In this document: positions 29,420 to 46,955 of the stretch, piece by piece
How positions within the stretch are numbered: position 1 is the first letter of the stretch
How the letters are laid out: each line of letters starts with the position of its first letter
Source of the DNA: Anaeramoeba ignava BMAN
Taxonomy: Eukaryota > Protista > Anaeramoebae
Assembly (NCBI GenBank): GCA_028826165.1
Contig: JAPDFW010000069.1
Coordinates: 124,001 to 188,000, forward strand
Reading direction: 5' to 3'
Length of the DNA: 64,000 nucleotides
Notes under the pieces: generated by a model
What the model was told of the DNA's origin: nothing
Seen by the model: only the letters and a program-made list of their open reading frames with translations
Database searches by the model: none
Made by a program: the position numbers and the translations under genes

Positions 29420-32027
29420 TCAGAAAAGATTCTTTGCTTTTTGAATCAAATTTTCCAAATTAATTGAAGAGTTTTTTTTCAACCATTTTCTTGCTTTTTC
29501 AACAACTAAAAACCATTCATCTTGAACAGAAGAGTGTTTTGTTTCCAAATAAAAAACAACAATAGCAGTGATCCAAACATTTTCAGAAATATTTTCAGGA
29601 ATTTCTTTACGAATTTTTTCAGTTGATAAAGAAATTTGGGAAGATAATTCTTCAGTTAAATCCCATGAACCATTTGCCTTTTGGAGATAAATAATTGATT
29701 CAACAACAGAAAGATTTTTAGGAGGAAGAATGGATTTTTCAGAATCTGTAACTATAATAATTGGGCTTTGGTTTGTGCTCTTATTTTGGTTTATGTGCTT
29801 AATTACTGGTTCTGGAGAAACTGATTTTTCTCGAATAGGGGGTGAACCATCTGATTTTAAGAGAGAAAGTCGATATTCAAGATTATCCATTTCATCCTCT
29901 TTTTCTTCTGCTTTGGATAAAGAATTGATGGGAGTTAATGCGTTGAGACTCAATCCTACTTCGCTATAAATTTCCTCCAAAACTTGATTAACCTCATCTT
30001 CAATATCTTCATCATCTTCATCGAAAATGGCATCATCCATAGTATCTTGTATCATATGAGAAGGTGAAGGTTTTCGAAGAGAATAAGACAAAGAAAACGA
30101 TTTGGGAGAATATTGACGAGCTGATTGAACAGGTTTTTCAACAGGTTTTTGAACAGGAATTTTGCGAACCACAATTTCTTCGATATTTTCAGATTCGTCT
30201 TCATTCTCAACAGTTGCAACAAAACTTGTTTTTGAAGACACAATTTGATAAGTTGTTCCTAAACGTATGATTTCCTTATCAATAAATTCCTGAGTGATTC
30301 CTTGAAGAAGAGAGCCTTGATCATTGTGAAACTTGCTTGTTTTTTCTGTCATCTCTCTGATCATCCATTTAGCAGCAAGAGGATGAAGAGCATTAGGCTG
30401 GCGGATACTCTCATCAAAAGAAAGAGGCAATTCCCATGAGAATTCCTTATTGCCTGACAACGCGCTCAGAATCAAAGTTGGTGATTTTGCTTGATTTTGA
30501 TTTCTTTGTTCCTCAACTTCCTTTTTATCAAAAAACATAAATATCAAGAATCGCGAGAGAGAGAAAATTGGGGGAAGTCTCCATGGAGTAACAAGTTCAG
30601 GAGCCTTGATATCCTTCCATTCAATCTTTGTGTTTGACAAACAGGGCTGAAGCGCAAGACGAAGTTGCCTCAAAACCTTTGATTTGATTTCCTCATTTTC
30701 AACAATAAACTCAGCTTGTCCACCTCCAGCACGCGCAATTCCTTCCACAAGCTCTTTGGATGCGCCGTGGCCAATTCCAAAAGTAAATACTCTAGTTGAA
30801 CCACGATTTCTCTTCACAATATCAAGACAATTTTGAGTATCCCAAACCTCCCCATCTGTCAACAAGAAAACTTGACGAGAAAACCCCTTGCGAGCGCTGG
30901 ATCTAAATATTTCCCTCAAAACTCCAATAAGTTCAGTGCCACCAAGATCTGCCTTTAAATCAAGTGCATGCGCTTTCGCTTGTGAGAGTGAATTGTCATC
31001 GTACATCACACTTTCGGGAAAAAGTTTTTCGAAAGTTGATCCGAATCCGTAGATGTTGAAAAAACATGATTCTGGAAGCGAATGAAGAAAAATCTCAAGT
31101 GTTTTTTTAACTGAATTAATTGGTGATCCACTCATGCTCCCACTTCGATCCAATAAAAATATCATTTCTGAGTTGACATCAAGCTCGCTCAGATCAGGAA
31201 AAAGAGTTGCCATCGCTACTACTTCTCCTTCCTTGTCTTCGCGTGTCACTACTCTTGGCTCGTGTGGGTATTCCTCTTGTACTAGAACCACAATATCCTT
31301 GCCGACTTCCTTTTCACTTGGCTGTAAAGAAACTGTGCAGTATTTGCTGTTTAATATGGGATTGATTTCGTGTGTTGGCGAAGTAACGTTTGTAATTTTG
31401 GATTGCATTTCCATGCTGATGTTTATGGTATATCCATAGGGAACTTTTTGCGAATATTCAACATTTGCCAAGTCAGTTTGTTGTGATTCTTCAATATGCT
31501 CAACTGGAACATAACGCGGTGCAATTGTTGTTGGCAAAAAAAACCTGTATCGTCCGTCTGGTTCTTCAGATAAGATTGTTACATATCTTATTGTCACAAC
31601 ACATTGTTTCTTTGCTCCTAAATTCCCAACATTTGTTACAAAAACATCTGGTTTTTCTTCTTCCATTTTTGCTCTATTTTTTTATTTTAAATGAGAATTT
31701 TATCTTTTTTAAAAAATTTTTTTTCTATTTTAATTACGCTGTTTTTCCTTGTGCAATCGCATCATCATAAATTTCTCTTGCTTTTTGTTTTTCTTTCACT
31801 TTCCCAATTATATGTTTTCCTTCCAAAAATACTTCAAATCCGCAAACTGCTGATTCTGAATCTAAAGGAAACACAAAAACTGTTTCTATAGGATTATTTT
31901 CTTCATTTTCATATCTTTGGTTTAATGTAACAGAAGCTGTAAATCCAAAAATTTCACAATTTACTGAAATTCCTTTAAGAGGAACTGTATTTGAAGTTTT
32001 ATTATTTACTAATCCAATTCTAACCAT
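29420..32027 (-). CDS. VIT + vWA domain protein (VWA5A-like)
   Basis: Exons 32027-31738 and 31673-29420. VIT: PLKGISV...QRYEN....PIETVFVFPL...AVCGFE, NVGNL. MIDAS: FLLDRSGSM, DLGGTEL, LLTDGEV, FTFGIG. C-terminal LQKANGSW. Confidence 0.9.
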
Positions 32028-32084
32028 TTTAAAAAGAAAAAAAAAATGAAAAAAAAATTTTTTTGCTTTTTTATTTATTATTTA

Positions 32085-35000
32085 ATTTTATTAACAATTT
32101 CAAATTAATTTATTATTTAATATTATTTAATTTTATAGATATTTTTTTATTCAAATATTTTAATAAATTTATTTCAATAATTAATTAATAAATTATTTAT
32201 TATTTATTTATAATTTATTTCAAAATATAATTTTATTAACAATTTCAAATTAATTTATTATTAAATATTATTTAATTTTATAGATATTTTTTGATTCAAG
32301 TATTTTAATAAATTTATTTCAACATTTAATTAATAAATTATTTAATATTTATTTATAATTTATTCAAAAAAATATAATTTTTTATTAACAATTTCAAATT
32401 AATTTATTATTAAATATTATTCAATTTTATAGATATATTTTAATTCAAGTATTTTAATAAATTTATTTCAATAATTAATTAATAAATTATTTATTATTTA
32501 TTTATAATTTATTTCAAAATATAATTTTATTAATATTTTCAAATTAATTTATTATTAAAATATTATTAAGATTAAACATTTATTTTTGATTAAAATATTT
32601 TTAATAAATTTATTTCAATAATTAAATTAAATAATTTATTATTTATTTATAATTTATTTCAAAATATAGTTTTTTAAAAATTTAATTTTTATTAATTTAT
32701 TTTAAATATTATTAATTTTATTTTTAATTCAAATATTTTAATAAATTTATTTCAACAATTAATTATAAATTATTTATTTTATTCAAATTTATTTGAAATA
32801 TAATTTTTATTAACAATTTCAAATTAATTTATTATTTAATATTAATTATTTTTTATTTATTTTAATTTATTTCAACAATTAATTAATAAATTATTTATTT
32901 TTAATTTATTTATAATTTTATTAACAATTTCAATTTTATTATTTAATATTATTTAATTTTTAGATATTATTCAAATATTTTTATAGATATATTTTTAATT
33001 CAAATATTTTTTAATAAATTTATTTAAAAAAATATTTTATTAAATTTATAAATTATTTATTATTTATAATTTTTATAATTTATTTTTATATTATTTTTTT
33101 AATTTTATTAACAATTTTTCAAATTAATTTATTATTAAATATTATTCAATTTTTTAGATATATATTTTTTTATTCAAATATTTTTAATAAATTTATTTCA
33201 ATAATTAATTAATAAATTATTTATTATTATTTATTTATAATTTATTTCAAAATATAATTTTATTAACATTTTCAAATTAATTTATTATTAAATATTATTC
33301 AATTTTTAGAGATATTTTTATTCAAATATTTTAATAAATTTATTTCAATAATAATTAATTATTATTTAAATTATTTATAATTTTTATTATTTATTTATAA
33401 TTTATTTTTAAAAATAAAATATTTTTATTTCAAATTAATTTTATTTAATATTATTTAAAAAATTAATATTATTTTATTTATTTTTATTCAAAATTTTATT
33501 TTAATTAAATTATTTTTATTTTCAAATATTTTAATAAATTTTTTTTTATTTATTTCAAATTAATTTTAATTATTTATTATTTAATTTATTTTTAAATATA
33601 ATTTTTATTAATTTTAAATTAATCAAATTTATTAAATATTATTCAATTTTATAGATATTTTTGATTCAAATTTATTTTAAAATAAATTTTTATTTCAACA
33701 TTTAATTAATTTCAACATTTATTATTTATTTATTATTTATTTATAATTTATTTTTAAAATAATTTTTATAATTTCAAATTAATTTATTATTAAATATTAT
33801 TCAATTTTATTTCATTTTAATTTATTATTAAATATTATTCAATTATTTTTATTTATTTTATTTATATTTTTTTATTCAAATATTTTTAATAATTTTATTA
33901 GATATATTTTTATTTATTTTAATAAATTTCAATTTATTATTTATTTATTTATAATTTATTTATAATAAATTTAAAATTTAATTTTATTAACATTTTCAAA
34001 TTAATTTATTATTAAATATTATTCAATTTTATAGATATATTTTTATTCAAATATTTTAATAAATTTATTTCAATATTAATTAATAAATTATTTATTATTT
34101 ATTTATAATTTATTTCAAAATAATTTAATTAACAAATTAATTTATTATTTAAAATATTATTAATTTTTAGATTTATTTTTATTCAAATATTTTAATAAAT
34201 TTATTTCAATATTTAGTCTAATAAATTATTTATTATTTTTATAATTTATTTCAAAAAATATAATTTTATTAACAATTTCAAATTAATTTATTATTAAATA
34301 TTATTCAATTTTATAGATATTTTAATTTAAAATTTATTTTTAATAAATTTCAAAAATAATTTTTTAATTTTAAAATTATTATTAAAATATAATTTATTTT
34401 AAAATATTAATTTTATAAATTTATTTTTTTAATAATTAAATTTATTTTTAAAAAATATTTTTTTATTTTTAAATATTTCAAAATTTATATTTTATTATTA
34501 ATTTTTAATATTTATTCAATTTTTTATAAAATATTTTTTTAAATTTATTTTAAAAAAAAAATTTTATTAACATTTTTAATTTATTATTAAATATTATTCA
34601 ATTTTTATAGATATATTTTTTTATTCAAGTATTTTAATAAATTTATTTCAATAATTAATTAATAAATTATTTATTATTTATTTATAATTTATTTCAAAAT
34701 ATAATTTTATTAACATTTTCAAATTAATTTATTATTAAATATTATTCAATTTTATAGATATATTTTAATTCAAATATTTTAACAAATTTATTTCAATATT
34801 TAATTAATAAATTAATTTATTATTTATTTATTTATAATTTATTTTAAAATATAATTTTATTAACAATTTCAAATTAATTTATTATTAAATATTATTAAAA
34901 ATATTTTATTTTTGATTCAAAATATTTTAAAAATTTATTTTAATAATTAATTAATAAATTTTTATTATTTATTTTAATTTATTTTAAATTTCAAATTAAT

Positions 35001-35720
35001 TTATTATTAAATAATTCAATTTTATAGATTTAATTAAAAATATTTTAATAAATTTATTTTATTAATTAATAAATTATTTATTATTTATTTATAATTTATT
35101 TCAAAATATAATTTTATTAATATTTCAAAAATTAATTTATTATTAAATATTATTCAATTTTATAGATATTTTTGATTCAAGTATTTTAATAAATTTATTT
35201 CAACATTTAATTAATAAATTTATTTATTATTTATTTATAATTTATTTTTAAAATATAATTTTAATTTTATTAACAATTTCAAATTAATTTATTTTAAATA
35301 TTATTAAAATTTTATTTCAACATTTAATTAATATATTTTAATTCAAAAATATTTTAATAAATTTATTTCATTAATTTAATTAATAAATTATTTATTTTTT
35401 TTTTATAATTTTTATTAATTAATTATTTAATTTTATTATTTATTTCAATTTAATAAAATTATTAAATATTATTCAATTTTATAAATATATTTTAATTCAA
35501 ATATTTTAATAAATTTATTTCAATAATTAATTAATAAATTATTTAATATTTATTTATAATTTATTTCAAAATATAATTTTTAACAATTTCAAATTTTTAT
35601 GTTAAAAATATTAATTTACGTTTTAGATTTTTTAAATATTTTTATTTTTAATAAATTATTTATTATTATTTATTTATAATTTATAAATATAAAAATTAAA
35701 TTATTATTAATTTAATTTAA
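32085..35720. repeat. Degenerate AT-rich tandem repeat, about 145-150-nt unit
   Basis: Recurrent AACAATTTCAAATTAATTTATTATTAAATATTATTCAATTTTATAGATA...TTCAAATATTTTAATAAATTTATTTCAA; first copies near 32093, 32238 and 32388; no ORFs. Confidence 0.85.
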
Positions 35721-36394: not shown

Positions 36395-39300
36395 ATGGAT
36401 AATAATAATAATAACCAAATTGAAAATCAAAATCAAAATGAAAATGAAAATGAAATGAAAAATTTAGAAAAAAAAGTAACAAAAAATTTAATTAAAGATT
36501 ATTCAAACCTTTTAAATGGAAATTCATTTAAAGATTTTTCAATTTTTGTTGAGAATAAATCAAATCCTTTTGAAATTAAAGTTCATAAATCAATTTTATC
36601 TTCAAGATCTCCTTTTTAATGAATTTTTAAAGGAGAAAACGATATTGATAGTTTTTTAAATCAATTTAATAAAAAGAAATGGAATCAATTTTAAGTTATA
36701 TTTATTATGGAAATATTTCTTTTGAGAATCAAGAAAATCTTCTCCAATTATTGGAAATTTCAATTTATTTCAAATTAAATTTATTGAAAGAAATTATTCA
36801 AAAAAAAATTTCAAATTCAATTAATTATTCAAATTTTTTCCAATTTTTATTCCAAAATCGAAATTTAAATTCAAATGAAATTGAAATAAAATGTTTTGAA
36901 TTAATAAATCAAAATTTTTCCCAAATTCAAAATAATGAGAATTTATTCAATTTAACTAAAGAAGAAATTATCAAATTTATTCAATTTAAACAAGAAAAAA
37001 AAGAAATTTTTCAATTTGATTTTTTTCAATTTTTAAATAATTGGATTAAAAAAAGAGTTAAAAGATTAAAATTAAGGAAATATAAACACAAAATGAATGC
37101 AAAGAAAAGATTATTTCATTCTTTTTTTTCATTATTTGATAAAGATTCAATTTCAAAACAAGATTTCGATAAATTAAAACAATTTGATATTTTTCTTCCA
37201 AATTCTTTTTAATTCATTTGGAAAGAACTATTTTGAAAAAGAAAAAGAAAAATCAAAGAAAATGAAAAGAAAATCAAAGAAAAAAAAAGGAAAATCAAAA
37301 ATCTAAAAAGAAAAACAAAAAATGGAAAAAAAAAATCAGAAAAGACAAACAAAAAGAAAAAGAAAATGGAAGAAAAAGAAGAGATAATAAAATAAAAGAA
37401 AAGATCAAATCATTTCAAATCTGAAAATCAAAAGAAAAGAAAAAAAAAGGAAAATCAAAAAATCCAAGAAAAAGAAAAGGAAAATCAAAAATTGAAATCT
37501 GAAAATGAGAAAAAGGAAAAAGAAAATAAGAATAAAGATAAGATTCTCAAACAAAAAGATGAAGAAATCCAAAATCTTAAATTATCATTTGAAAAAGAAA
37601 AACAAAAAATAAAAGAAATTCAAAAAGAAGAATCAAATCAAAATCAAAATAAATTATTGAAGATTTTACCTCAATTTTCAAATTCAGAAATTATTAAAGA
37701 TATTGAATATGTTAAGAAATTACAAGAATGGATAAATGATAATGATTTTTTTTATAAAATGAAAAAAGGATTTTCAGCAAAAAGAGATGGATTTGATTGT
37801 GAAAATTGGCATAAAGCAGTTGATGGGAAAGGAAAAACATTAGTTATTATCAAAACAAAAGATAATTTTATTTTTGGAGGTTTTACTAAAGTTGGATGGA
37901 CAAAAGATAAATCAAAATGGAGAGAAGAAGATAGAAATAGAAATAGAAATAATGATTATGGATATATTATTGATTCAAATGCATTTATTTTTTCATTAAG
38001 AAATTATAAAGGAGATAGAAAACCAGAAAAGTTTACAATTAAAAAAGGAAAAGAAGAATATGCAATTTATTATGATTTAAATTCTGGTCCATTTTTTGGA
38101 TGTAAATATAAATAATTTATATTTAATAAATAATTATTATTATAATTAAAATTAAATTAATAAATAATCCAAAATATTAATATAATAAATAATATTATTA
38201 TTTCAATTTAAAATAAAATTAATTTTAAATTAAATTATTATTAATTATTATTAAAATTAATTATTTATATTTATTAAAATAGATTGTAAATAATTTATAT
38301 TTAATAAATATTTATTAATATAATTAAAATTAAATTAATAAATAATCCAAAATATAAATATAATAAAAATATTATTATTTCAATTTAAAATAAAATTAAT
38401 TTTAAATTAAATTATTATTAATTATTATTATTAAAATTAATTATTTATATTTATTAAAATAGTTTGTAAATAATTTTTATTTAATAAATATTTATTATTA
38501 TTATTAAAATTAAATTAATAAATAATCTAAAATATTAATATAATAAATAATATTATTATTTAAATTTAAAATAAAATTAATTTTAAATTAAATTATTATT
38601 AATTATTATTAAAATTAATTATTTATATTTATTAAAAATAGCTTGTAAATAATTTATATTTAATAAATATTTATTATTATAATTAAAATTAAATTAATAA
38701 ATAATCTAAAATATTAATATAATAAATAATATTATTATTTAAATTTAAAATAAAATTAATTTTAAATTAAATTATTATTAATTATTATTAAAATTAATTA
38801 TTTATATTTATTAAAATAGGGAGTAAATAATTTATATTTAATAAATAATTTATTATTATAATTAAAATTAAATTAATAAATAATCTAAAATATTAATATA
38901 ATAAATAATATTATTATTTAAATTTAAAATAAAATTAATTTTTAAATTAAATTATTATTAATTATTATTAAAATTAATTATTTATATTTATTAAAATAGG
39001 GAGTAAATAATTTATATTTAATAAATATTTATTATTATAATTAAAATTAAATTAATAAATAATCCAAAATATTAATATAATAAAATAATATTATTATTTA
39101 AATTTAAAATAAAAATTAATTTTAAATTAAATTATTATTAATTATTATTAAAATTAATTATTTATCTTTATTAAAATAGAAGGTAAAAATAATTTATATT
39201 TAATAAATATTTATTATTATAATTAAAATTAAATTAATAAATAATCTAAAATATTAATATAATAAATAATATTATTATTTCAATTTAAAATAAAATTAAT

Positions 39301-40075
39301 TTTAAATTAAATTATTATTAATTATTATTAAAATTAATTATTTATCTTTATTAAAATAGATCGTAAATAATTTATTTATATTTAATAAATATTTATTATT
39401 ATAATTTAAAATTAAATTAATAAATAATCCAAAAATATTAATATAATAAATAATATTATTATTTCAAATTTAAAATAAAATTAATTTTAAATTAAATTAA
39501 TTATTAATTATTATTAAAATTAATTATTTATCTTTATTTTTAAAATAGTTTGTAAATAATTTTTATTTAATAAATATTTATTATTATAATTAAAATTAAA
39601 TTAATAAATAATCTAAAAAAAATATTAATATAATAAATAATATTATTATTTAAATTTAAAATAAAATTAATTTTAAATTAAATTATTATTAATTATTATT
39701 AAAATTAATTATTTATATTTAATAAAATAGATTGTAAATAATTTATATTTAATAAATATTTATTATTATAATTAAAATTAAATTAATAAATAATCCAAAA
39801 TATTAATATAATAAATAATATTATTATTTCAATTTAAAATAAAATTAATTTTAAATTAAATTATTATTAATTATTATTAAAATTAATTATTTATATTTAT
39901 TAAAATATTTATAGGTGATATTGAGTTAAATTCGAATTTACAAAATGGTTATTCAAATTTTGGTAAAAGTTATAATCTACCTAATGGAATTGAATATAGA
40001 ACAAATGAAGCTCAAAGTTATTTAGCTGGTTCTTTTAGATGGGTTGTTGATGAACTTGAAACTTATTTCATTTAA
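36395..40075 (+). CDS. BTB/POZ + coiled coil + TLDc domain protein; frameshifted in this sequence; TLDc interrupted by a tandem intron/microexon array
   Basis: BTB: FKDFSIFV...IKVHKSILSSRSPF, MESILSYIYYG. TLDc: GFSAKRDGF....WHKAVDGKGKTLVIIKT...IFGGFT..GW, DSNAFIFSL, GPFFG. Final exon 39915-40075 reads DIELNSNLQNGYSNFGKSY...YLAGSFRWVVDELETYFI*. Frame breaks fall in homopolymer runs near 36615-36680 and 37205-37490. Confidence 0.85.
38102..39914 (+). repeat. Tandem array of 10 near-identical GT-AG intron units (175-186 nt) separated by nine variable 3-nt putative microexons
   Basis: Each unit starts GTAAA and ends ATAG. 3-nt slots: 38283-85 ATT, 38463-65 TTT, 38642-44 CTT, 38820-22 GGA, 39000-02 GGA, 39180-82 AAG, 39360-62 ATC, 39549-51 TTT, 39731-33 ATT. 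Confidence 0.92.
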
Positions 40076-40414: not shown

Positions 40415-43400
40415 TTATTTAATTTTTGGAATAACAAAATTTCCAAAATTTGAAGAAAGAATTTGGAAAGGATTTGATTTTGATTTTAATTTTGAATTTA
40501 ATTTTGAATTAATTTGATCTTTTGTTTTAGATAATTTTGAACGTAATTTTTTTGAATTTTGATTAATTTCTTTATCATTTTCTTTATCATTTTCTTTTAA
40601 ATTTTCTTTATCATTTTCTTTATCATTTTCTTTTAAATTTTCTTTTAAATTTTCTTTTAAATTTTCTTTTGAATTTTCTTTTAAATTTAAATTAGAATTA
40701 TTTGGAATTTTTCTTTTTTTGTTTTGTTTTTTAATTCCACTTTTTGGTTGAGAAATATTTTGAATAATATTATTTGTTTTTGAATCTTGAAAAGGAATTA
40801 TTTTTTTATTTTGTTGAATTTCTTCACTTAAAGAATCATAATCATAATCATAATCACTTTGATATTCTTGTTCAATTTCTTCTTTATTACTTTCTTGACT
40901 TGATAATTGATTAAAAGAATCAGGAATATCTTTTTTTCTTTTAGTTCTTGAAACTTTTTTTTGATTTTGTTTTTTTTTATCATCTTCTTTTTTCGAAGAA
41001 TTTTTATTTTTATTTTTATTCTTGTTTTTATTTTTGTTTTTGTTTTTGTTTTTGTTTTTATGTTTATGTTTATGTTTATGTTTATGTTCTTTTTCTTGTT
41101 TTTGTTTTTCTTGTTTTTGATCTGAACTTAAATTTGAACTAATATTTTCAGATTCCTGTTTTGGTTTTATTTTTCTTTTTGAATTTTTGTAAGCTTTTCT
41201 ATTTTTTGGAGATTTTTTAGATCTTAAATTTCTTTTTGATTTTTTTTTGTTGTTCTTTTTTTTCTGTTCTTCTTTTTTTATTTCTTCTTCTTTTTTCTGT
41301 TCTTCTTTTTTCTGTTCTTCTTTTTTTATTTCTTCTTCTTTTTTCTGTTCTTCTTTTTTCTGTTCTTCTTTTTTCTGTTCTTCTTCTTTTATTTCTTCTT
41401 TTTTTATTTCTTCTTCTTTTATTTGTTCTTCTTTTTTGATTTCTGTTGTAATTGGCAAATTGGAAATCTTCATATTTAAATCTTCAATTTCTTTTTTTGC
41501 TTTTTCTTTTGATAATTTATGTTTATTTCTTAATAAATTATATTGATTTTGAAGTTTAGAAAATTTTTCTTCGAAATTTTGTTGAGATTGAAATTCTTGT
41601 TTTAATGTTATGTCTCCTTTCATTTGACTCAATTGATTTTCAAGTTCGATGATTTTGGAAGCATGTTTTTCTTCATTCTTTTTTAATTTCTCAAGAAGTT
41701 CAATGTTTTGTCTTTCTAATTCTTCATAACGTTTTTGCATTTCTTGTTCTTTTTGTTCTTCTTTTTGTTCTTCTTTTTGTTCTTCTTCTTGAGAAGTTAA
41801 ATTTGAATAATTTGATGAATTAATCAAATCTTGAGCAGAATTGTAATTTTCTTGTTGAATATCGAATTGTTTTTCAAGATGTAATTTTGTAATGTTAAAG
41901 GAATCCAATTTGTGTTGATTAATCTCAATTTTATGATCAAAAAGCATTTTTTGCTTTTCCATTTCTGCTTGGTCGAGTTTGCATAACAAACAAAATTTCA
42001 AAAATTCAAGAGTAGTGTTTTCTTTGGAAGTGATAGTGAACTTCTCTTCCATTTCTTTGTATTTCTCCTCGTGCTTTGCAAGTAGTTTCTTTTGTGATTT
42101 AATTTCATCTTCAAGTTTTTGGATTTGGGATTGATATTTTTGCTCTTCATTCAATTTGGCTTGAGAATTTTCATTTTTTAATCTTTCTAGTTCTTGGGAA
42201 TGAGTTTTTTTAAGAGTTTCAATTTCTGTAGCACGTTCATCGACAAGTTTCTGGAGGATTTCAAATTGATTTTTTTGAGCAAGAAGTGATTCTGATGTGA
42301 TTTGAGGTTGATCGAAATCAAGATTGATTGATGTATAATTTTTGATAGCTTTTGCTTTATGGGCGTATTGGAGAGAAGACAACGTAGTAGAATAGTTATC
42401 AGCATGCTGATTCAAAGTTGTGATCATAACTGTTTTTGAGTTTCCGCCAAGGGAATCCTTCAAAAGCATTGTGAGTCGGGAATCGCGATAAGGAACAATG
42501 AAGTTGGTTTTGTTTTTGCATTTTTTGTAGAGAATCAAAAGAACATTTGTCAATGCAGTCAAAGAAGAGTTGATTTTGCATGTTTCCACAAGAGTATCGC
42601 CCTCAGTTTTGGCAGCAGTTAGTCTCTCGCTTCCTGCAAGATCAACGATATTAAGCTTACTGATCTTTGTTTTGACATCGTTTTCCTTTTTGCTGTGGAT
42701 TGTTAGTGTGAGTATTGAATGTGATCTTGAACTTGAAAAATTTGATTTTGTTTCTGAAACGGCTCGCACTCGCTGTCCGATTTCAATGAATTCGAGTGCT
42801 TCTTTGCGTGTTGTGATCGGGAGATTGAGAGTAGGCGATCCTGTGAGTACCATTTCTCCTGTGTCGGGTCTTTCGTGCAATTCAATTTTGGGGAGAAATT
42901 TGATGAGCTGCCATCTTTCCATTTTTTTCAAGCTTCTTTCGGATGTGCGAGGATTAAGAAGATCATAAATATAATTGTTATAAAGCTCAACATATGAAAT
43001 TGAGATTGTGTAGTTGATTTCAGGATTTTGTTCACAAGTTGAAAAAAGATAATCCACTATTTTTGGGATTAGACCTGGTTTTTTTTTTGTTCCTGAAATT
43101 GTATAAGTTTTTCCACTTCCAGTTTCACTATTTAATTGAAAATTTTTTTTCTTTTTTAAAATTTGTTTTTTTTTATTATAATTTATTTAATCAATTTACC
43201 CATAAGCTAAGATCGTTGAATTATATCCATCAAGTGCAAAATCAACAAAAGGTTTGATATTTGAGAAAATTTCATCTTGAGAAGACTGAGCTGGAAAAAC
43301 TCGATCAAATGTATAACTTTTGCTATTTGAACTTCTTTTTGAAGGAGTTCTTGAAATTTTTGAAAGAGGTGTTCCAGAAATGTTATGGAATGAAAAATCT

Positions 43401-43627
43401 TGAGAATGTTTTTCGGATATTTTTTGAGGAGTTTTGTTTGTTTTTTCATTTAGATTTGGTGCGAATGGAGGTAAACTTTGTCTTCTTTTTCTTCTTGGTG
43501 TTGTTTGAGGAATTGGATCAGGTTTAGTTATCATAATCATTTTTTCTGATGAACGAATACAACTTTTATGAATATTTTCAGTTTCGATTGGTTTTATTCT
43601 AACATAAACAGAAATTGGTTCTTCCAT
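40415..43627 (-). CDS. Kinesin with N-terminal motor domain, coiled coil and low-complexity basic tail
   Basis: Exons 43627-43200 and 43127-40415. VYVRIKP, YTFDRVF, spliced P-loop AYGETGSGKTYT, SYVELYN, SSRSH, IVDLAGSER, VPYRDSRLTMLLKDSLGGNSKT. Confidence 0.95.
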
Positions 43628-43775
43628 TTTAAATAAGAAAAAATAAAAAATTTAATTTAATTTAATTTCGTTAAAAAAAAAAATGAATAAATAAAAATAA
43701 AAATAAAAAATAAAAATAAATTTTTAACGATTAAATTCAAAATTTCAATTAAAAAAATTAATAAATATTCGTTAA

Positions 43776-46700
43776 AAATTCAAATTAAATTTATTTAAAA
43801 AATTCAAATTTATTTAAAAAAAATGGAATTAAATTTATTTAAAAAATGTGGAATTAAATTTATTTAAAAAATTGGAATTAAATTTATTTAAAAAATTGAA
43901 ATTAAATTTATTTAAAAATGAAATTAAATTTATTTAAAAAAATGGAATTAAATTTATTTAAAAAATTGTGGAATTAAATTTATTTAAAAAATTCAAATTA
44001 AATTTATTTAAAAAATTGGAATTAAATTTATTTAAAAATGTGGAATTAAATTTATTTAAAAAATTAGAATTAAATTTATTTAAAAAATTAGAATTAAATT
44101 TATTTAAAAAAGTGGAATTAAATTTATTTAAAAAATTAGGAATTAAATTTATTTAAAAATTGGAATTAAATTTATTTAAAAATTGGAATTAAATTTATTT
44201 AAAAATAGGAATTAAATTTATTTAAAAAATTAGAATTAAATTTATTTAAAAAGTGGAATTAAATTTATTTAAAAAATTGGAATTAAATTTATTTAAAAAA
44301 TTCAAATTAAATTTATTTAAAAAATAGAATTAAATTTATTTAAAAAAGTGGAATTAAATTTATTTAAAAAAATGGAATCTAATTTATTTAAAAAAATAGA
44401 ATTAAATTTATTTAAAAAATGGAATTAAATTTATTTAAAAAAATAGAATTAAATTTATTTAAAAAATGGAATTAAATTTATTTAAAAAATGGAATTAAAT
44501 TTATTTAAAAAATGGAATTAAATTTATTTAAAAAATGGAATTAAATTTATTTAAAAAATTGGAATTAAATTTATTTAAAGTGGAATAACATTAAAAAGTG
44601 GAATTAAATTTATTTAAAAATTCAAATTAAATTTATTTAAAAAAATTCAAATTAAATTTATTTAAAAAATTAGAATTAAATTTATTTAAAAAAATGGAAT
44701 TAAATTTATTTAAAAAAGTGGAATTAAATTTATTTAAAAAATAGGAATTAAATTTATCTAAAAAAATGGAATTAAATTTATTTAAAAAAATAGAATTAAA
44801 TTTATTTAAAAAATTCAAATTAAATTTATTTAAAAAAATGGAATTAAATTTATTTAAAAATTCGAATTAAATTTATTTAAAAATTGAATTAAATTTATTT
44901 AAAAAATTAGAATTAAATTTATTTAAAAAAATTCAAATTAAATTTATTTAAAAAATTAGAATTAAATTTATTTAAAAAATTCAAATTAAATTTATTTAAA
45001 AAAATAGAATTAAATTTATTTAAAAAGTTAGAATTAAATTTATTTAAAAATGTGGAATTAAATTTATTTAAAAAATTGGAATTAAATTTATTTCAAAAAA
45101 TAGGAATTAAATTTATTTAAAAAAAGTGGAATTAAATTTATTTAGAAAATTGGAAATTAAATTTATTAAAAAAATGGAATTAAATTTATTTAAAAGAATT
45201 GGAATTAAATTTATTTCAAAAAATAGGAATTAAATTTATTTAAAAAAAGTGGAATTAAATTTATTTAAAAAAATTCAAATTAAATTTATTTAAAAAATTC
45301 AATTTAAATTTATTTAAAAAATGGAAATTAAATTTATTAAAAAAAAATTGAAATTAAATTTATTTAAAAAATTGGAATTAAATTTATTTAAAAAATTAGA
45401 ATTAAATTTATTTAAAAAAATGGAATTAAATTTATTTAAAAATGGAATTAAATTTATTTAAAAATGGAATTAAATTTATTTAAAAATATGGAATTAAATT
45501 TATTTAAAAAAAGTGGAATTAAATTTATTTAAAAATGGAATTAAATTTATTTAAAAAGTGGAATTAAATTTATTTAAAAAAATGGAATTAAATTTATTTA
45601 AAAAAATGGAATTAAATTTATTTAAAAAATTCAAATTAAATTTATTTAAAAAAATAGAATTAAATTTATTTAAAAAAATAGAATTAAATTTATTTAAAAA
45701 AATAGAATTAAATTTATTTAAAAAAATGGAATTAAATTATTTAAAAAAAATAGAATTAAATTTATTTAAAAAAAATGGGATTAAATTTATTTAAAAAATT
45801 CTAATTAAATTTATTTAAAAAATTAGAATTAAATTTATTTAAAAAATTCAAATTAAATTTATTTAAAAAATATGGAATTAAATTTATTTAAAAAATATGG
45901 AATTAAATTTATTTAAAAAAATAGAATTAAATTTATTTAAAAAAAATGGAATTAAATTTATTTAAAAAAATAGAATTAAATTTATTTAAAAATTAGAATT
46001 AAATTTATTTAAAAAAATGGAATTAAATTTATTTAAAAATGTGGAATTAAATTTATTTAAAGAATTCTAATTAAATTTATTTAAAATAATTCTAATTAAA
46101 TTTATTTAAAAATATGGAATTAAATTTATTTAAAAAAAATTAAATTTATTTAAAAATAGAATTAAATTTATTTAAAAAATGTGGAATTAAATTTATTTAA
46201 AAAATGGAATTAAATTTATTTAAAAAATTGGAATTAAATTTATTTAAAAAATTAAATTAAATTTATTTAAAAATTCAAATTAAATTTATTTAAAAAGTGG
46301 AATTAAATTTATTTAAAAAATTCAAAAAAAAATTGGAATTAAATTTATTTAAAAATTGGAATTAAATTTATTTAAAAATGTGGAATTAAATTTATTTAAA
46401 AATAGAATTAAATTTATTTAAAAATAGAATTAAATTTATTTAAAAATAGAATTAAATTTATTTAAAAAAATGGAATTAAATTTATTTAAAAAATTCTAAT
46501 TAAATTTATTTAAAAAGTGGAATTAAATTTATTTAAAAAATTCGAATTAAATTTATTTAAAAAAATAGGAATTAAATTTATTTAAAAATTCGAATTAAAT
46601 TTATTTAAAAAATTAGAATTAAATTTATTTAAAAATTCGAATTAAATTTATTTAAAAAGTTGGAATTAAATTTATTTAAAAAAATGGAATTAAATTTATT

Positions 46701-46955
46701 TAAAAAATGGAATTAAATTTATTTAAAAAATGGAATTAAATTTATTTAAAAAGTTGGAATTAAATTTATTTAAAAATGTGGAATTAAATTTATTTAAAAA
46801 GTGGAATTAAATTTATTTAAAAATTCAAATTAAATTTATTTAAAAAATGTGGAATTAAATTTATTTAAAAAATTAGAATTAAATTTATTTAAAAAAGTGG
46901 AATCTAATTTATTTTATCTAAATTTATTTCAAAAAATAAAAAGTGGAATTAAATT
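43776..46955. repeat. Intergenic minisatellite, about 22-25-nt unit (xxGAATTAAATTTATTTAAAAA)
   Basis: About 3.2 kb. Constant core AATTAAATTTATTTAAAA with a short variable linker (TGG, GTGG, TTAG, TTCA, TTCG, TAGG, TTCT). Confidence 0.95.

Follow-up and report, generated by a model that had tools for sequence, protein, structure and literature searches.

Near-identical introns and three-nucleotide slots arrayed within a TLDc loop of Anaeramoeba ignava

A TLDc-domain gene of the anaerobic amoeba Anaeramoeba ignava is interrupted, at 38102-39914, by ten GT...AG units (175-186 nt in length) with nine slots of exactly three nucleotides lying between them. This arrangement raises two questions: whether the slots are coding microexons that reach the message, or instead the scars of an intron that was amplified in place; and, if they are coding, whether the resulting protein loop is varied among transcripts or in the DNA itself. 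The array lies within a window of 64,000 nucleotides (that is, the whole stretch of DNA that was analyzed, from contig JAPDFW010000069.1), for which a first-pass annotation had proposed that a constant repeat and a variable slot together form a cassette that builds a variable loop, one codon at a time.

Anatomy of the array and its host gene

Analysis of the locus bore out the ten near-identical units, the nine slots and the triplets originally read in them (Table 1), as well as both of the translations that had been given for the region, which are GPFFG-YFSWRKDLYC-DIEL with all nine slots and GPFFG-C-DIEL with none. TRF describes the array as a repeat with a period of 180, 10.0 copies and 94% matches, and every one of the 25 G residues found in its 1813 nt is located in a donor, an acceptor or a slot. 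The site of the array is in phase 1, and each slot therefore completes a codon with its first two bases and opens the following codon with its third. The original description of a slot as a single codon is refined accordingly, since the three bases are divided between two codons. Slots that end in AG, as does slot 6, number only 2 among the slots counted.

Table 1. Positions in the window of the exons, intron units and slots of the interrupted BTB-TLDc gene
Feature	Position	Strand	Remarks
Exon 1, BTB-TLDc gene	36395..38101	+	BTB region, coiled coil and first two-thirds of TLDc; ends with GPFFG plus one base (phase 1)
Intron unit 1	38102..38282	+	First-donor variant, 6 nt longer than internal donors; long donor in 19/20 arrays
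Slot 1, ATT	38283..38285	+	
Slot 2, TTT	38463..38465	+	
Slot 3, CTT	38642..38644	+	
Slot 4, GGA	38820..38822	+	
Slot 5, GGA	39000..39002	+	
Slot 6, AAG	39180..39182	+	Ends in AG; possible competing acceptor immediately 5' of donor
Slot 7, ATC	39360..39362	+	
Slot 8, TTT	39549..39551	+	
Slot 9, ATT	39731..39733	+	
Internal intron units 2-9	38286..39730	+	175-186 nt each, GT...AG, alternating with slots 2-8
Intron units 2-5, singly	38286-38462, 38466-38641, 38645-38819, 38823-38999	+	
Intron units 6-9, singly	39003-39179, 39183-39359, 39363-39548, 39552-39730	+	
Intron unit 10	39734..39914	+	Last-acceptor variant, 6 nt longer than internal acceptors; long acceptor in 17/20 arrays
Exon 2	39915..40075	+	C-terminal third of TLDc: 2 nt, followed by 52 codons (DIEL...ETYFI) and a stop codon

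The first exon matches the Pfam TLD family (PF07534) at 37492-38100, with an E-value of 4.8e-13 and a score of 49.8 bits (curated cut-off 24.5), and displays 88% DNA identity over approximately 1190 nt with an intact paralogue (annotated protein P0049, which has BTB and TLD domains). The BTB-TLDc protein begins with an N/Q-rich stretch that is followed by the BTB domain; a Pfam search of the window copy's own frameshifted pieces detected no BTB domain. The frame of exon 1 is broken at several A/T homopolymers (at about 36618, 36631, 36652, 36675, 37206 and 37235), with several deletions located in A/T runs, and these breaks may be either long-read errors or real lesions; the assembly was generated from Nanopore reads and polished with short reads. 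Homologue searches, with the exons taken separately, returned, among the matches listed, only A. ignava proteins at NCBI, and none that derived from transcript contigs.

A predicted structure of the skip-all form of a paralogue's domain (that is, the form lacking every slot), with a pLDDT of 96, places the array site in the turn between strands 108-109 and 114-116, and the best Foldseek matches to that model are all TLDc structures (probability 1.0, TM up to 0.70). Judged by motif and position, as distinct from a residue-level alignment, the insertion site is most probably equivalent to a bend, rich in glycine, that has been described between two strands of Ncoa7 (PMC8608904). Annotated paralogues contain from 1 to 13 residues at the loop site, and nine extra residues are thus within the natural range, with 28 lying beyond it; a run of more than four Y, N, D or H residues at that site was found in no annotated paralogue.

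Elsewhere in the window, the minus strand carries a gene apparently of the VIT-vWA type (vault/inter-alpha-trypsin inhibitor-like, judged by its motifs, and split in two frames) at 29420-32027, and a kinesin-like gene (identified by motor motifs, with a low-complexity tail) at 40415-43627, beyond which 132 copies of a 24-nt satellite occupy 43774-46914. The intergenic region between the vWA-type gene and the BTB-TLDc gene holds approximately 24 degenerate copies of a 145-nt A/T satellite (32083-35595). A relationship between that satellite and the intron unit was considered and rejected, their identity of 67% falling below that of a shuffled control.

Distribution of the arrays and variation of their slots

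Comparison of the intron unit with the A. ignava genome yielded 652 matches, and comparison of exon 2 yielded 513 candidate loci. Within the best 150 of those 513, 33 display an open frame of only 62-66 codons, which indicates that an intron lies directly upstream, and most of the others are found in long frames, which indicates that they are intronless at that point; by this reckoning, at least 33 paralogues are interrupted at the array site. As the first-pass annotation had anticipated, such arrays were indeed recovered from paralogues: 19 others were parsed completely and, together with the window copy, make up the 20 arrays used for all array statistics. Every one of the 20 occupies the identical phase-1 site after GPxFG(G), and each contains 2-28 slots; this recurrence speaks against both chance and a local fault of the assembly. 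The slot length is 3 nt in 219 of 232 cases, the other 13 comprising ten one-base homopolymer variants, two tandem acceptors that leave 3 nt, and one doubtful donor, and GT...AG ends are present in 231 of 232 normal-length units (the exception being a parsing case). The intron units are approximately 97% alike, with a mean of 4.7 substitutions per 175 columns within arrays versus 5.4 between arrays.

Additional features of these loci are informative with respect to how the arrays change in length. At two further loci the exons are separated by 190 and 368 nt, which are the exact one-intron form (one intron with both long ends) and the exact two-intron form (two introns plus one slot), and which correspond to what unequal crossing-over inside intron bodies predicts. 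The outer splice ends are kept across arrays (the long first donor in 19 of 20, the long last acceptor in 17 of 20), an observation that was also counted toward recombination. The end of exon 1 in the window (37981-38100) is 98% identical to a segment of another contig (G000:C60:1035065-1035184, array L030), and the slot series of the two arrays are entirely different.

Four arrays (L025, L037, L039 and L040) end with an internal-type acceptor, and in these exon 2 begins one codon earlier (with xYDF or xFDF, and not xDI), as if the last slot had been fused to exon 2 through exact loss of the last intron or, alternatively, as if the array had moved into another type of paralogue. A 168-nt satellite without splice sites, 84-85% identical to the intron unit, is present in 6-18 copies downstream of L025, L039 and L040, and three of its junctions lie inside the L037 array; it may be either the source or a derivative of the intron.

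The suspicion that the slots vary more than the units around them was substantiated across the family, with diversity values of 0.61, 0.34 and 0.69 for the three slot positions against an intron column mean of 0.031. Two intron columns, located 14 and 79 bases before the acceptor, also reach a diversity of 0.6 (with A, C and T present, and with the two columns mutually unlinked), and therefore high diversity alone is not unique to the slots; the column at -14 could affect acceptor strength. The slots had also been noted to be richer in G and C, and their G+C content is 26%, versus 2.8% in the units. Among between-array pairs with identical introns, the slot differs in 97%.

Such differences might in principle reflect Nanopore errors or mis-assembly, which could likewise distort the lengths of the arrays. 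The assembly is derived from Nanopore data and homopolymer indels in it are evident, but 23 different triplets recur over the 20 loci and multi-base substitutions are confined to the slot; furthermore, loose ends in a DNA sequencing run (X1) show an internal-type acceptor joined to donor context. Errors of this type account for the few slots of 2 and 4 nt rather than for the overall pattern, and an artefactual origin of the variation is very improbable.

In several of their properties, the slots behave like coding sequence. The middle base (which is the wobble position in phase 1) is T in 176 of 219 slots and is the least variable of the three, and both of the amino-acid-changing positions vary freely; most of the loop residues so encoded belong to the set D, Y, N, F, I, S and G. 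Stop codons at the joins of adjacent slots were observed 4 times, versus expectations of 9.3 after a global shuffle (P=0.017) and 7.1 after shuffling within arrays (P=0.09), and stops over all order-preserving slot pairs were observed 57 times, versus 81 (global, P=0.022) and 71 (within arrays, P=0.039). After correction of one-base slot errors, 17 of 20 arrays can be read through without a stop when every slot is included; the others (L024, L036 and L040, all long arrays) then contain stops, in L040 already at the first slot, and these three are either pseudogenes or in need of skipping.

No clear linkage was found between the slots and intron polymorphisms located 9 to 79 bases away (P 0.05-0.92), which points to either very fine-scale exchange or recurrent change. 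Block duplication of the slot series was considered as well and was rejected, there being no excess of repeated pairs or triples. The flanking exons are themselves diversified, with up to ten residues at single sites and piN/piS values of 1.6 and 2.1, ratios that are only suggestive because a strong codon bias depresses piS.

These observations bear upon a simpler account, in which one intron was amplified head to tail, the array is removed as a whole, the slots are non-coding junction scars and the protein is the skip-all form. It is in keeping with the presence of A/T satellites everywhere in the window, with the intergenic arrays formed by the splice-site-free 168-nt relative of the unit, with public gene models, which either adopt the skip-all form or break off within the first intron, and with the predicted fold of the skip-all protein, which is good. 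Extra conservation of the splice dinucleotides was discarded as evidence, since no measurable difference in conservation separates them from the remaining intron columns (approximately 12 of 244 junctions are lost), and this too was counted in favor of the satellite account. However, that account leaves unexplained a slot diversity that is 10-20 times the intron mean, the G+C content and fixed 3-nt length of the slots, their wobble pattern and the deficit of stops, and it is further weakened by RNA.

Inclusion of the slots in RNA

Four sequencing runs were placed on the end of exon 1 (37655-38140) in the form of contigs (Logan), which drop rare variants. Two of these, X4 (listed as 'DNA?') and X5 (listed as '?'), contain none of the listed one-base indels and have no depth past 38113, versus a depth of approximately 12,000 in DNA run X1; across the first 39 nt of intron unit 1, at the level of the family and of contigs, neither X4 nor X5 has any depth, again versus approximately 12,000 in X1. 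Runs X4 and X5 behave as RNA-seq of A. ignava and are usable for questions of splicing.

Eleven X4 contigs depart from the exon at 38100 and continue without branching, the median extension being 98 bases. The consensus of these extensions reads as one Gly codon followed by nine xAT codons, with an agreement of 0.55 (compared with approximately 0.60 in simulations). Of the 40 genomic sites most similar to the end of exon 1, no fewer than 33 belong to array or intron genes. Nine xAT codons out of nine were produced in 0 of 20,000 simulations of skip-all transcripts, nor were they produced from skip-all transcripts mixed with those of intronless genes; they arose at a frequency of 0.0001 from back-translated loops of intronless (non-array) paralogues, and at frequencies of 0.016-0.24 if half or more of the slots were included. 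The latter range was obtained after correction of one-base slot errors, full inclusion of uncorrected slots having yielded 0 of 20,000. The failure of skip-all transcripts to generate the consensus, in addition to the slot properties described above, makes removal of the array as a non-coding satellite unlikely.

A single contig (depth 584, with ten differences and 98 loose bases) matches a 22-slot gene in L023, and is alone of four candidates in having no 31-mer shared with other fetched paralogues inside its span. For this gene, the number of loose bases allowed is at most 46 if all slots are skipped and 97-113 if all are included, and the contig fits 18-22 of the 22 slots; the assignment is not unique, with about four further genes showing a similar mismatch count. 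The consensus and the lengths of the contigs, rather than slot-by-slot letters, favor strongly but indirectly the conclusion that slots enter the message in sister genes of the window copy, no contig having been tied to the window copy itself.

The same data bear on the possibility of combinatorial splicing, in which each transcript would take a different ordered subset of slots and one gene would give rise to many loops, with shuffling at the DNA level occurring as well. Any subset would remain in frame, given the 3-nt length of the slots and the uniform phase 1 of the introns; skipping would be needed for L024, L036 and L040 to yield a functional product; the reduction in stops extends to all order-preserving pairs; the fit of the RNA consensus is about equally good at 50% and at 100% inclusion; and a precedent is provided by truffle NACHT-ankyrin genes, for which such splicing is reported (PMC4986451, citing Iotti et al. 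2012). Against it stand the absence of branching over the length of the contigs (although Logan contigs drop rare variants), the one contig that fits nearly all of its slots, and the consideration that identical short introns should favor splicing between nearest pairs. Subset choice of this kind is plausible but, on the present evidence, less probable than inclusion of all or most slots. A Dscam-type choice of one cassette per transcript is argued against by the nine consecutive slot-like codons, and inclusion of 25% of the slots fits the consensus worse than does high inclusion.

The cassette proposed in the first-pass annotation is upheld in part, with respect to its cloned introns, its hypervariable, coding-like slots, the presence of such arrays in paralogues, and RNA contigs of sister genes that fit the inclusion of many slots. 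None of the outcomes named there as refuting was observed, the transcript evidence being that of sister genes. The variation that can be demonstrated, however, resides in the DNA, between genes and between units, rather than in a choice made for each transcript.

A proposed mechanism, related systems and implications

The explanation that we favor, at a probability of roughly 0.55, is that the slots act as coding microexons, as a rule with none left out, and that the loop diversifies in the DNA by recombination between cloned introns together with selection. The introns would be removed one after another, such that all or most slots reach the mRNA, and each slot would lengthen the turn of the TLDc beta-hairpin by one residue (9 in the window copy, 2-28 in parsed arrays). 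A 3-base exon cannot recombine by itself, but near-identical introns of 180 nt would serve as its homology arms; through unequal crossing-over and gene conversion, slots would be gained, lost and rearranged, both inside one paralogue and from one paralogue to another, with the frame unshifted, and selection would maintain the diversity of the slots. Bearing against this explanation is the fact that no annotated paralogue has a loop longer than about 13 residues. Binding to cullin-3 is common among BTB domains, and a role as a substrate adaptor with a variable TLDc surface may reasonably be envisioned; the outcome would be a DNA-level diversifier of a binding loop on BTB proteins that resemble cullin-3 substrate adaptors.

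Several elements of this arrangement are already known from other systems. Codon-sized microexons in an expanded, receptor-like family, with alternative splicing reported, are found in the NACHT-ankyrin genes of Tuber melanosporum (Iotti et al. 2012, PMID 22289772, via PMC4986451 and PMC13449251). The likeness is that candidate intracellular receptors form an expanded family in which the presumed binding region contains tens of codon-sized exons; the difference is that the truffle exons encode ankyrin repeats in an NLR, whereas those of A. ignava lie in one TLDc loop of a BTB-TLDc protein in a metamonad, between introns that are approximately 97% identical clones shared by different genes. In Ectocarpus, the ROCO-LRR and NB-ARC-TPR genes undergo shuffling of exon cassettes in the DNA under diversifying selection (PMC3341825), as is paralleled here by the flank piN/piS values and by the absence of clear slot-intron linkage; their rapid gene birth and death and proposed role in recognition were also counted as likenesses. 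Each of those cassettes corresponds to a whole repeat per exon, in contrast to the one residue (a 3-nt exon) inserted here in a single loop of a globular domain. The micro-exon genes (MEG) of Schistosoma, which encode mostly secreted proteins and in which micro-exons account for as much as 75% of the coding sequence and are subject to skipping (PMC4015677), similarly contain runs of very short exons able to vary a protein by skipping; unlike them, the slots of the window copy account for 27 nt of approximately 1.9 kb of coding sequence, are all 3 nt in length, and lie between cloned introns in a BTB-TLDc protein. Finally, NCOA7, OXR1, TBC1D24 and mEAK-7 share the TLDc fold, but are few, conserved V-ATPase binders, in contrast to the more than 500 candidate loci, BTB fusion and probable diversifying selection found in A. 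ignava.

In exon size the array comes nearest to the truffle system, and in its DNA dynamics to Ectocarpus, but it is a member of none of the truffle, Ectocarpus or MEG systems. Literature searches for cloned-intron arrays found nothing comparable, and the A. ignava genome paper, in its preprint text and part of its journal supplements, does not mention microexons or TLDc arrays. What was nowhere found described in the literature searched is the combination of a repeat made of near-identical whole introns, a cargo of one residue, and a target that is a single loop in a globular domain.

If the favored explanation is true, the slots would provide a fast-evolving, antibody-like binding loop in an anaerobic amoeba, and would show how a genome is able to alter a protein loop by single residues without ever losing the frame. 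The public gene models seen miss the slots, and dozens of proteins are therefore probably mis-predicted. These genes, in which as many as 28 exons of 3 nt would follow one another between identical introns, also offer a natural test of the lower limit of the spliceosome. A further and rather speculative extension, which we consider improbable as it stands, envisions a repertoire comparable to antibody CDR3 displayed on ubiquitin-ligase adaptors, in which each gene would give many loop variants per cell (through either combinatorial splicing or ongoing intron recombination) for the recognition of foreign proteins of symbionts, prey or viruses. A repertoire generated by splicing, if true, would make this symbiont-bearing protist a candidate for having a diversified system of recognition.
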